Counted from the stretch's first letter, positions 47,496-56,793 are shown. The stretch is DNA of 64,000 nt from Octopus sinensis (GCF_006345805.1 NC_043011.1:10850001-10914000), one strand, 5' to 3'. The notes: generated by a model not told the origin, from the sequence alone. Program-made: numbers and translations.

Positions 47496-47585
47496 AATTT
47501 GTTACGATCGTTTCACGCTACATCATTTTATTAAACATTGTAAGTATTACAACAGTTTTAAAATGTTGAGCAATCATCAGCCATT
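47496..47585 (-). ncRNA. Degenerate type I hammerhead ribozyme motif (GATC loop III)
   Basis: aatgg CTGATGA ttgct...agcgt GAAA c gatc g TA acaaatt; core intact, stems I and II poorly paired. Confidence 0.55.
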
Positions 47586-47832
47586 AATAGAGGTTTTCCA
47601 TCAATACATATACTTATTTTCATGTTAAATGATAACATTATAAAGAGGGTAGATATACCCCATGGATAACACCGTACAAAATTCTGGTGCATCTAATTTA
47701 AGTATCACATTCATTTCAATCTAAATTTTGCTGAACGTATATATATATATGTGTGTGTGTGTGTGTGTGTGTATGGTCTCTTGCAAGAAGTTTATGGACC
47801 GTCTTCTCTGATGACACCACTTTGAAGCAGGG

Positions 47833-48519
47833 ATGGTAAAGAACTTCGTGATTCACAAGGAATTCTGCGATGGGGGCAAGAACACTGATGCACTTTTGAA
47901 TCAGCAGTTTGTAGTTAGTGAAGATGTTCTCAATCTCATACCTGGATTACCCGTGAAGGCAGCACTCGCAGAACCACCAAAGTTGGAAGAAGTTGCAGTG
48001 GCTGTCTCAATGATGAATATTGGGAAATCTCCGGGCATGGATGGCATACATGCGGAGTTGTTACAGCATGGTGGTGAGAAACTTCTGCAGCAACTTCACT
48101 CTTTGTTTGGTAAGATATGGGCTAGTGAATCTGTACCTGAGGACTGGAGAGATACAGTAACGGTGGTCTTGTATAAGGGAAAGGGCAACAGGAATGATTT
48201 TGGTAACTATAAGGGAATATCATTGCTTTCTGTCGTAGGAAAGGTTTTATGCAGGGTACTTCTGGATCGTCTGCTGAAACACGTTGCAGATTGTGTTCTT
48301 CCAGAAAGTCAATCTGGCTTTCATGTGGGACGTGGCACTGCTGATAGGATCTTTTCAGCTAGACAGCTTCAGGAGAAGTGTGTGGAACAGGGTCTGGATT
48401 TGTATCAGGTTTTTGTCGATCTGACAAAAGCCTTTAATACCGTTAATAGAAAAGCATTGTGGAAAGTCCTCCAGAAACTTGGGTGTCCTGAAAAGTTCCT
48501 TGCTTTGGTGGAAGGGTAG
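47833..48519 (+). pseudogene. RTE/BovB-like reverse transcriptase fragment (different family), truncated at both ends
   Basis: GKSPGMDGIHAELL, GNYKGISLLSVVGK, LPESQSGF, LQEKCVEQ, FVDLTKAF. Confidence 0.9.
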
Positions 48520-49074
48520 TCAACACTCAAGACAGCTATTATGCTGTCCCCAACAGAAAAACCACTACGTGGATTCTTTTGAGACTAGTAAGGAACAATT
48601 ATGAACATTTTTATTACACTTAACTTTTTAAAATATTTTTGATAAGGTTCGTTTTTATCAAGGACCAAAATATGTAAAATAAAAATTTATCTTATATAGT
48701 AGCGTTTTTCAAACTTCGTTTTTATACACACACACACACACACACACACAACACACACACACACACACACACACACACACACATATATATATATATATAT
48801 ATATATATATCACCGTGACCGACCAGGCCATCAGATGTTGTTACACATCGCTGGTCACAATGCGCTTTGCATTGTTTTAGCCTTCAAATGACGCCATCCC
48901 GCTGGCTAAGCGAGCAGGCCAATATATATATATATATATATATATGTATATATAAAAGCAATTAAGATTCAAATCAATTCTAAAGAATTTACTTGAATGT
49001 GGTACTTAACTTAGATGCACCAGAAAACTATATGGTGTTAACCATACAGTAATGTGGGGTGATTATAAACGAGA

Positions 49075-49407
49075 AAGAAGCAACAAGAATGGATTAGTTT
49101 TTAGTACAATTGTTTCATACAAAGACAGGCTTTATTACAAGTTGCAAAAATTGCAGCAGATAAAAATGTCCCGTACTCATCAGCTAAAATACATGTGAGT
49201 TCTCCAAACATCTTATTGGGTGAGGCTATACTCATGAAGTATTGGAGATAATTTCATTTAAGGCAGATTTAGGTTGCAAACAGATTTCCAAAGTTCCTTA
49301 ATGATGATGCACAGTCTTTTATCTGCTGCAATTTTTGCAACTTGTAATAAAGCCTGTCTTTGTATGAAACAATTGTACTAAAAACTAATCCATTCTTGTT
49401 GCTTCTT
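49075..49407. repeat. Perfect 91-bp inverted repeat (49075-49165 and 49317-49407)
   Basis: Exact reverse complements by eye; the left arm overlaps a hammerhead motif. Confidence 0.95.
49099..49189 (-). ncRNA. Type I hammerhead ribozyme (AATT loop III)
   Basis: ttttag CTGATGA gtac...gtat GAAA c aatt g TA ctaaaa: 6-bp stem I, full core, stem II with extension, predicted GUA cleavage between 49105 and 49104. Confidence 0.85.
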
Positions 49408-55130: not shown

Positions 55131-55264
55131 TATATATATATGTATGTATGTATGTATATATATGTATGTATATATATATATATATATATATATATGTATA
55201 TATATATATGTATGAATATATATATGTATGTATATATATATATATATGTATATATATTATATAT

Positions 55265-56430
55265 ATATTCAAAGTGAGATAGGGGTTATGAGTGTAACCC
55301 ACTATGGGATATCAGTTCTCCAATATACTGCCAGTAAAGTACCCAAAAGGCTAATATATAAATGCTTACAGTTGCAATGCAATTAGTTCATTTATTGTAT
55401 TAGATGGCGAAGGTAAAATATTTTACCTCAAATTCATAATACAAATAATAAAATGGAGGAACAGATTCCTTTCAATCATCGACTTACAGATATTACCAAT
55501 TCATATAATTTATTAATTAATTAAATAGGAACATCCAAATCCAACAGAATAAAACAATATACATCAATAAGTAAAATAATACCATAAAAATATTACATAT
55601 AAAATGAATCTTACAGCTGTTTCAGCCTGTAGATAAAAGTATCTCATTGTGCCTATATTAGTCCATATGCATCTGTCTATATATTATATTATATTGTGTT
55701 ACACTGTATTATATTATACTATATTTTATGTGGTATTTTCCATCTACTATGTATTGTGAATAGCAGAATGCACATATTCCATTATTGGTATTATTAATAA
55801 TAATAATAATATTAATTTTTTTGGTAATGTAATACAATGACCTTTGGACTTTTTATGTGTACCCTTTGATGTGGATATATATGTATACTCCAGTATATAT
55901 ATTTGATTATCTGTAACCTTATGTGTATGTATATTATTATATATATCCTTATATATATGTATATACACTTTATATATATATATATATATTATATATATAT
56001 ATATATATATATATTATAATATATAGATATATATAATATATCATATATATATATATATAATAATATATATATTCTTGTATATATTCTTGTGTATGTGTAT
56101 TTTGTTTCATATTTATATTTGCATTTTATATTTTCATAATTGTACTTTATAATCTCTGACGAGGCCCTGAGATATATATATAACTCATTATTAACTGCAT
56201 ATTTAACTCATTTTTAACTGAATAATATAGGCACAATAAGATACCTTTATCTACAGGCTGAAACAGCTGTAAGATCCATTTTATATGTAATAATTTTATG
56301 GTATTATCTTACTTATTGATGTATATTTTTTTATTGTTTTATTCTGTTGGATTTGGATGTTCCTATTTAATTAGTTAATAAATGATATGAATTGGTATTA
56401 TCTGTAAGTTGATGATTCTTATTTGTATTA
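55265..56430. mobile_element. ORF-less hammerhead-bearing element, inverted pair C
   Basis: Minus copy 55265-55665 (half ribozyme, long extension) is inverted against plus copy 56140-56430 (full ribozyme, ends cttatttgtat); AT-rich spacer. Confidence 0.75.
56152..56275 (+). ncRNA. Type I hammerhead ribozyme (AGCT loop III), long stem II
   Basis: atct CTGACGA ggcc...ggct GAAA c agct g TA agat; predicted cleavage after 56271. Confidence 0.82.
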
Positions 56431-56730
56431 TATACGTATATTATATATATGTATATATATGTATATATATATATATATATATATATATATATATATATGT
56501 ATATATATATATATATATATATAATATGTGTGTGTATAAAAAACATTACGTTATATAATTAGGGTTTAGTAAAAAAAATTACTTTACCACACACCAAACT
56601 TTTAGAATAGCAGCCAAAAAGTTTAGCTATTTCCTCTACTATAAAAAAGTCTCCCAGACAATGTATACTCAAAATAATTCATGTAGGTGTAGAGGGGAAA
56701 AATAACGAAAGGTCACACGTACATCGATTA

Positions 56731-56793
56731 CTTGAGAACGCGCGTTTCTGGATTAGTTGGATATAGAGATCAACATTTCCGTCATCAGCCAAG
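56731..56793 (-). ncRNA. Type I hammerhead motif (GCGC loop III)
   Basis: cttgg CTGATGA cgga...tcca GAAA c gcgc g TT ctcaag; full core, bulged stem I, C-A mismatch at the base of stem II. Confidence 0.65.

Follow-up and report, generated by a model that had tools for sequence, protein, structure and literature searches.

Penelope-like elements (PLEs) of metazoan genomes carry type I hammerhead ribozymes with a very short, palindromic helix III; many of these motifs are isolated or lie in pairs on opposite strands, and many divergent families can be found in a single genome (PMC4209133). Most genomic copies have been reported as isolated motifs left by truncated elements (PMC4209133). They cleave weakly and only as dimers (PMC4209133; review PMC6765202), the dimer cleavage being credited to Lunse, Weinberg & Breaker 2017, as relayed in PMC6765202. 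PLEs are a substantial class of repeats in octopus genomes (PMC13282606, PMC8967140), and the literature that we searched holds no mention of hammerheads specifically in cephalopods. Here, we describe a cluster of hammerhead motifs in a 64-kb stretch of the Octopus sinensis genome (GCF_006345805.1, NC_043011.1:10850001-10914000; hereafter “the window,” with positions counted from its first letter). In our judgment, these motifs are probably real hammerheads, carried by fragments of Penelope-like elements in a (TA)n tract.

The way in which PLEs insert is also well described. Their copies are 5'-truncated, are often accompanied by an adjacent inverted and likewise 5'-truncated copy, and often carry an extension of 30-40 base pairs (bp) at one end only (PMC8557442). 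They prefer microsatellites, and in the Naiad and Hydra clades these are (TA)n (PMC8557442). Canonical hammerheads are present in Hydra elements, a clade with members in molluscs, and missing from Naiads, which are the PLEs that this paper reports from cephalopods; some Naiads have the halves of the core 35-50 nucleotides (nt) apart (PMC8557442). In work with a purified PLE protein, both target strands are cleaved and extended, and reverse transcription starts at two internal sites, the “tail” being the sequence between them (PMC11167929).

A regular-expression scan of both strands of the window returns 14 GAAACNNNNGTH sites, nine with a palindromic tetranucleotide, and all nine lie within 47.5-56.8 kb. 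The loops are AGCT (five sites), AATT (two), GATC and GCGC (one each), which are the sequences listed in an earlier reading of this DNA made without database searches (the sequence-only reading). In each of the nine copies, ACNNNNGU forms an 8-nt palindrome, and helix III consists throughout of only A15.1-U16.1 and C15.2-G16.2 around the palindromic tetraloop. This is the minimal, type I design that had been claimed, and it matches the architecture of PLE hammerheads (PMC4209133). The 3' core, GAAAC-NNNN-GUA/GUU (G12-A13-A14, A15.1-U16.1, and a non-G H17), is present at six sites and in three further half copies.

The 5' box was counted when CTGANGA fell no more than 150 nt upstream of the 3' half. 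Five sites have it, at a distance of 33-100 nt (core spans in Table 1), so that C3-U4-G5-A6-N7-G8-A9 is kept at five of the six sites. Six complete hammerheads had been counted in the sequence-only reading; five have intact cores, and three of these are structurally sound, but the sixth reads CCGAAGA and its core is broken. The three half copies proved to be genuine 3' halves without a 5' box, each of them the second, 5'-truncated arm of an inverted pair. When the descriptor was relaxed so that helix III could hold any palindrome of even length (2-10 nt), no convincing motif emerged in the remaining 55 kb, which agrees with the sequence-only reading that the first 47 kb hold no convincing example.

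How many such motifs should be expected by chance? Our null model was a set of 300 dinucleotide-preserving shuffles of the window, the comparison that the sequence-only reading had proposed. Shuffled windows hold on average 6.1 GAAACNNNNGTH sites and 0.43 of the palindromic version. Sites with both core boxes and a palindromic loop number five in the real window versus 0.09 per shuffled window (maximum 1), and sites with core, palindrome, and helices I and II of at least 4 flush bp number three versus none in the 300 shuffles. The motifs are non-random, and the shuffles exclude a chance origin for them.

A variant of the chance explanation would have consensus matches arise in AT-rich, repetitive DNA and then be multiplied by the duplication of one repeat. 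An empty Rfam result, the origin of five of the nine palindromic sites in one family, and the want of good helices in two of the five intact cores can all be cited in its favor. However, the count is not explicable by duplication of a single lucky match because the copies fall in three to four independent sequence families, and even if each family is counted only once, three to four families with core and palindrome stand against an expectation of 0.09 per window. We regard this explanation as extremely improbable.

Flush helices I and II (4-6 bp for helix I, at least 4-7 flush bp for helix II) are found only at three sites, namely the AGCT copies of elements B and C and the AATT copy (Table 1). 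The 33-100 nt between the boxes fold alone into a single hairpin, with the ends meeting at the core, in six of six copies. This helix II hairpin has z-scores of -5.2 and -3.9 in two AGCT copies and of -3.7 in GATC; in the element B copy (helix II z = -5.2), the unconstrained minimum free energy fold gives helix I and helix II by itself. Going by sequence and fold, three of the six copies look competent. The element A copy is predicted to be inactive owing to the U4-to-C change in its 5' box, and the GATC copy, a decayed relative of AATT, has no convincing helix I (essentially none) by helix search and relaxed descriptor.

Table 1. Positions of the hammerhead copies and of the elements that carry them in the window
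Feature	Position	Strand	Details
AGCT hammerhead, element C, intact	56152-56275	+	Core 56156-56271; helix I 5' strand AUCU 56152-56155; CUGACGA 56156-56162; helix II hairpin 56163-56259 (97 nt), base GGCC/GGCU, 4 flush bp, first pair G.U; GAAAC 56260-56264; loop AGCU 56265-56268; GUA 56269-56271, predicted cleavage after 56271; helix I 3' strand AGAU 56272-56275 (helix I 4 bp)
AGCT hammerhead, element B, intact	51386-51512	-	Core 51508-51390; CUGAAGA 51508-51502; helix II 100 nt, base GGCC/GGCU, 4 flush bp, first pair G.U; GAAAC-AGCU-GUA 51401-51390; helix I AUCU/AGAU, 4 bp
AGCT hammerhead relic, element A	50457-50583	-	Core 50579-50461; CCGAAGA 50579-50573 (U4 to C); GAAAC-AGCU-GUA 50472-50461; 10.1-11.1 G-C
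AATT hammerhead, intact	49099-49189	-	Core 49183-49105; helix I UUUUAG/CUAAAA, 6 bp; CUGAUGA 49183-49177; helix II 60 nt, 7 flush bp (GUAC.../...GUAU, first pair G.U) plus distal hairpin; GAAAC-AAUU-GUA 49116-49105
GATC hammerhead core	47503-47580	-	CUGAUGA 47580-47574; helix II 59 nt, U.U at 10.1/11.1; GAAAC-GAUC-GUA 47514-47503
GCGC hammerhead core, single-copy element	56731-56793	-	Core 56788-56737; CUGAUGA 56788-56782; helix II 33 nt, C.A at 10.1/11.1; GAAAC-GCGC-GUU 56748-56737; helix I 5 bp with one unpaired C
AATT 3' half (GAAAC-AATT-GTA)	49366-49377	+	5'-truncated second arm of AATT inverted pair
AGCT 3' half (GAAAC-AGCT-GTA)	51659-51670	+	5'-truncated second arm of element B
AGCT 3' half (GAAAC-AGCT-GTA)	55612-55623	-	5'-truncated arm of element C
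AGCT element A, inverted pair	50204-50936		Minus copy 50204-~50590, short 3' terminus; plus copy 50596-50936, long terminus
AGCT element B, inverted pair	51010-51869		Minus copy 51010-~51540, long terminus and ribozyme; plus copy 51653-51869, short terminus
AGCT element C	55258-56430		Minus copy 55258-55663, long terminus; plus copy ~56100-56430, short terminus and ribozyme
AATT element	49075-49407		91-bp arms 49075-49165 and 49317-49407, 100% identical
GATC element, single 5'-truncated copy	47466-~47720	-	Right boundary approximate; abuts (TG)n(TA)n
GCGC element, single copy	56540-57076	-	3' end abuts (TA)n(TG)n at 56429-56535

The core and helices of these copies are conserved and covary. 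Over the ribozyme region, the three AGCT elements share 69-75% identity, and only 31% of the columns are invariant in the alignment of the five AGCT arms that hold the 3' half. The longest invariant block in these arms, GAAACAGCTGTAAGAT (16 nt), spans exactly G12 to the 3' strand of helix I, and the 5' box of the two intact AGCT copies varies only at N7 (C or A), the single free core position. This coincidence of invariant blocks with the core speaks once more against chance matches, as do the restriction of box variation in the intact copies to N7 and the presence of compensatory changes.

RNAalifold, applied to the three AGCT copies, recovers helix I and the long helix II. When the AGCT alignment is placed on the explicit hammerhead structure, 95% of the cells are paired and six pairs have changed on both sides; slid controls, in which the partners are moved by 1-3 columns, give 28-41% of cells paired and 0-1 compensatory pairs. 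The same level of covariation was reached in 1 of 500 shuffles. The AATT and GATC families can be compared in the same manner: BLAST aligns them at ~68% over 114 nt, from their common 3' terminus to past CUGAUGA, and 5 of 17 helix II pairs are compensatory. Both outer positions of the loop differ between the two (A..T to G..C), with the palindrome preserved. The “four variants” of the sequence-only reading do form four sequence families, but the AATT and GATC families are related to each other.

The insertion architecture of the carrier elements can be read directly from their boundaries (Table 1). By self-comparison, the element families occur nowhere else in the window. The arms of element A are 98% identical and have microsatellite flanks on both sides; those of element B are 95% identical with (TA)n flanks; and those of element C are 82-93% identical, the two copies being separated by unique sequence and (TA)n (55664-56100). 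In the AATT element the minus copy extends through the center and holds the entire ribozyme. Identity between arms is 93-100% within a pair versus 70-87% between elements, and therefore each pair was made from one template. The inner arm ends fall at ~105-140, 213, 246, and ~360 on the longest copy and differ in every element, as would be expected for independent 5' truncations.

The outer ends are defined 3' termini that adjoin a TA, TG, or CA microsatellite; only at the left side of the AATT pair is the nearest microsatellite ~120 nt away. In every family, the sense strand of the ribozyme points to such a microsatellite-side terminus. The distance from the predicted cleavage site to the 3' terminus is 30 nt in AATT and GATC, which have the terminus ...ATTCTTGTTGCTTCTT in common, ~200 nt in GCGC and the short form of AGCT, and ~380 nt in the long form of AGCT. 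In each of the three AGCT pairs, one arm ends after ...CCATTTTCTTATYTTGTAT and the other runs on for ~175 nt, to ...CCCCTATCTCAMTTT. TA/TG microsatellite blocks are located at 49814-50200, 50925-51017, 51867-52241, 55130-55268, and 56429-56535. A 100-N assembly gap (57077-57176) truncates the upstream part of the GCGC element.

Inverted repeats of this kind also invite a comparison with miniature inverted-repeat transposable elements (MITEs) or foldback DNA transposons, in which the hammerhead-like sequence would either have arisen by coincidence or be conserved as a site of protein binding or of structural importance. The AATT element is indeed MITE-like, with 333 bp and perfect 91-bp terminal inverted repeats, and all AGCT elements are inverted repeats in which half of the ribozyme lies within the repeated arm. 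However, equal arms are found only in AATT, and the GATC and GCGC copies are single-armed; target-site duplications, the other mark of such transposons, would be masked by the microsatellite flanks. The AGCT arms end ~175 nt apart and meet at an inner junction that differs per element, which indicates independent 5' truncations and no fixed terminal inverted repeat. A DNA transposon would also leave unexplained why the full 15-nt core with flush helices is found in two unrelated families, why helix II covaries, and why the ribozyme sense strand is always directed at the microsatellite-side terminus. We consider this explanation quite improbable, although less so than chance.

The features that can be recognized here are those of PLE insertion: 5'-truncated copies with an adjacent inverted copy, a (TA)n target, and an extension at one end. 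In these three respects the elements resemble the (TA)n-targeting PLE clades Hydra, Neptune, and Naiad (Craig et al. 2021, PMC8557442; Frangieh et al. 2024, PMC11167929). The ribozymes, in turn, resemble the PLE minimal hammerheads of Cervera & de la Pena 2014 (PMC4209133) in being of type I with an intact core, a helix III of 1-2 bp with palindromic A15.1...U16.1, a larger-than-usual helix II, and a short helix I. They are likewise similar in falling into many divergent families per genome, in occurring as single motifs or as opposite-strand pairs 100-700 bp apart, and in lying near the 3' end of the element.

The sequence-only reading had named Penelope-like and retrozyme families in one breath. 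The PLE part is supported by motif and insertion architecture; the head-to-tail arrangement of retrozymes is absent from the window, where Tandem Repeats Finder and a repeat search found no head-to-tail tandem of any of the four families and only inverted pairs. The copies could nevertheless be solo or rearranged retrozymes of the type without long terminal repeats (non-LTR), that is, non-autonomous units whose tandem transcripts are cut by type I hammerheads, circularized, and reverse-transcribed by a PLE enzyme. Like the metazoan non-LTR retrozymes (Cervera & de la Pena 2020, PMC7229834; Li et al. 2026 preprint), the elements here are AT-rich, non-coding units of a few hundred nt, have no open reading frame (ORF), carry a type I hammerhead with a minimal palindromic helix III, and probably rely on PLE enzymes. 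A 2026 preprint (10.64898/2026.07.22.740005) moreover derives retrozymes from the pseudo-LTRs (pLTRs) of PLEs and allows for solo monomers.

Unlike retrozymes, however, these elements begin at variable 5' ends and stop at fixed 3' termini beside microsatellites, a pattern that speaks for linear templates inserted by target priming and against units in circular permutation. Their hammerheads also lack the short helix II and the loop1-loop2 contacts of the canonical retrozyme type (PMC7229834). On balance, we think a retrozyme origin unlikely, while noting that the boundary between it and an origin from PLE fragments is blurred and partly semantic because retrozymes are reported to be PLE-derived and also to occur solo.

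Several observations weigh against identifying these copies as PLE fragments with real hammerheads, and it is important to consider them together. The first concerns Rfam, a search that the sequence-only reading had recommended: no hammerhead model matches, whether at the gathering threshold over the whole window or at E<=10 over 46.5-58 kb, and the sub-threshold output consists of microsatellite-driven miRNA false positives (mir-297, mir-1277, and others). The miss is probably owed to the long helix II insertion combined with the minimal helix III. Helix II itself, a hairpin of 33-100 nt, goes far beyond the 6-8 bp described for PLE minimal hammerheads. The 10.1-11.1 pair, a highly conserved G-C elsewhere, is G.U in the three best copies (AGCT of elements C and B, and AATT), U.U in GATC, and C.A in GCGC, with G-C only in the core-mutated copy of element A; natural hammerheads with U.U in this position are known (PMC3088659, PMC7229834). 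PLE minimal hammerheads typically have an additional nucleotide between A9 and 10.1, which the present copies lack, and no loop-loop tertiary contacts are evident in these copies. A register with a bulged nucleotide after A9 was rejected, as it gives 0-1 bp only.

Other points of this kind concern samples, insertion, and coding capacity. Independent copies number just three for AGCT and two for AATT/GATC, and the sequences examined for covariation are also those from which the helix II structure was obtained; because the structure came from those three sequences, the AGCT covariation is supportive but not decisive. The one-sided extension of the AGCT elements is ~175 nt, as against 30-40 bp in PLEs. 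Neither tblastn with Poseidon_Ac (a protein sequence from the supplement of PMC11167929) nor a GIY-YIG motif scan found any reverse transcriptase (RT) or GIY-YIG endonuclease remnant of a PLE in the window. The absence of an accompanying RT or GIY-YIG ORF had already been stated in the sequence-only reading, and the reverse transcriptases that the window does contain belong to long interspersed nuclear elements (LINEs) only. Because there is no such remnant, the link of the elements to PLEs is architectural only, and a clade could be assigned only with a protein. This absence is not decisive, however, given that most PLE hammerheads in genomes are isolated motifs left by truncation (PMC4209133). 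The sequence-only reading had gone on to call them non-autonomous; from the window alone, such elements are not separable from heavily 5'-truncated copies of autonomous ones.

Having weighed these points, we still hold the explanation by PLE fragments with real hammerheads in a (TA)n tract to be the best one for the whole of the evidence, and a likely one. According to this explanation, a large (TA)n tract would have served repeatedly as a target for Penelope-like retroelements or for short non-autonomous derivatives of them. The remnants would be 3'-terminal fragments of four families, mostly as head-to-head inverted pairs of 5'-truncated copies, each pair from one template. Each family would encode, 30-380 nt upstream of its 3' end, a sense-strand type I hammerhead with an intact CUGANGA/GAAA/A15.1-U16.1/H17 core, an open helix I of 4-6 bp, and a helix II of 33-100 nt.

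With only two bp, helix III could presumably not stabilize the active fold within a single molecule. The 8-nt self-complementary segment (ACAGCUGU, ACAAUUGU, ACGAUCGU, or ACGCGCGU) could instead pair with the same segment of a second copy, located either in the same transcript or in another transcript of the same family. Such pairing would build an extended helix III and a double-hammerhead fold, in which each core would cleave after H17 (GUA or GUU). We infer in the same way that the elements are transcribed, cleave as dimers, and are mobilized by a PLE reverse transcriptase/endonuclease, with the long and short ends arising from two RT start sites.

Predicted energies are in keeping with pairing of this type. 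Homoduplexes are predicted at -13.1 (AGCT), -8.4 (AATT), -12.0 (GATC), and -16.5 (GCGC) kcal/mol, versus -6.2 kcal/mol or weaker for all mixed-family duplexes, and cofolding of the element B ribozyme predicts an intermolecular ACAGCUGU helix. A family-specific “dimerization code” is thus thermodynamically plausible, at the level of these models; please note that the predicted specificity follows trivially because the palindromes differ. A helix III of 1-2 bp with a palindromic tetraloop is also found in the newt and axolotl satellite hammerheads (Forster et al. 1988, as relayed in PMC6765202; PMC7229834), and here as there activity would be expected only through double-hammerhead pairing. As those sources describe them, the amphibian copies differ from the present ones in lying in long tandem arrays and in having canonical helices I and II with tertiary contacts.

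The departures from consensus listed above also allow a bolder suggestion, which we put forward tentatively and regard as rather unlikely. The copies may form a distinct, cephalopod, Penelope-associated subclass, marked by a helix II of 33-100 nt, a G.U pair at 10.1-11.1, and no bulge between A9 and 10.1, which escapes both Rfam and the published RNAmotif descriptors. In such a subclass, the non-complementary palindromes would confine double hammerheads to transcripts of the same family, and the long and short 3' ends would record two RT start sites, ~175 nt apart, on the two target strands. If this were true, PLE clades scored as “lacking canonical hammerheads,” in cephalopods and perhaps elsewhere, might carry them.

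Searches beyond the window were made at both the protein and the nucleotide level. Spurious ORFs that overlap the AATT element have no word-sharing protein in a collection of 5.8 billion sequences. The exact pattern GGYYGAAACAGCTGTAAGAT has seven matches in metagenome contigs, all in unrelated contexts and none with an upstream CTGANGA; having no 5' box, they were dismissed as chance. A scan of viral contigs with the GGYYGAAACAGCTGTAAGAT pattern gave 0 matches. A 22-kb locus of Argonauta hians, reached via a homologue of the LINE described below, is free of the motif, of homologues of the five elements, and of PLE ORFs.

The neighborhood of the elements is rich in other repeats. A LINE ORF at 43728-45746 (minus strand) is intact, with 672 amino acids and an RVT_1 domain, and a second, frameshifted copy at 52216-55057 (plus strand) sits in the (TA)n tract of the hammerhead elements, with AGCT element B on its left and C on its right. 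The best relative of this ORF, at 88% identity, is from the Logan assembly SRR20902413, and the best named one (58%) is from the octopod Argonauta hians, which makes a cephalopod origin plausible from the sequence itself; the 672-amino-acid ORF itself is absent from the collection of 5.8 billion proteins. An inverted repeat of 85% identity (47640-47713 and 48990-49060) brackets a LINE RT fragment (47815-48516) together with microsatellites. It ties the upstream part of the GATC element to a fragment in plus orientation immediately to the left of AATT, and thereby suggests that insertions here were nested or rearranged. A SINE-like repeat (that is, one resembling short interspersed nuclear elements) at 49430-49810 adjoins the AATT element, and similar translated stretches are present at 17781-18176 and 22557-22811.

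Farther away, a satellite at 57474-63092 has a period of ~140 bp (sub-periods 66-281). Its consensus right of ~61.4 kb is the reverse complement of that on the left, and the array seems to be inverted around 61 kb. A Mariner/Mos1-type transposase ORF (Transposase_1, HTH_48) and a Tc1-like helix-turn-helix fragment are located at 889-1899 and 46303-47091, both on the minus strand. A C2H2 zinc-finger array (zf-H2C2_2, zf-C2H2) extends over several overlapping open frames at 13987-15623 (plus strand); it probably represents a host gene, or else a pseudogene, of an expanded family.

Hammerheads with a minimal, palindromic helix III are established in PLEs and retrozymes across animals, and the present case extends this known pattern. 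Its main interest lies in the atypically long helix II, which hides the motifs from standard searches, and in the regular long and short 3' ends. Rfam and descriptors built on a short helix II overlook these copies, and genome-wide ribozyme counts for cephalopods are probably too low. The inverted pairs, with one long and one short 3' end as a rule, agree with the recent proposal that PLE reverse transcription has two start sites, and these ends could serve to test that proposal in vivo. Finally, four families with different palindromes, side by side in one (TA)n tract, provide a compact natural test set for family-specific double-hammerhead pairing.

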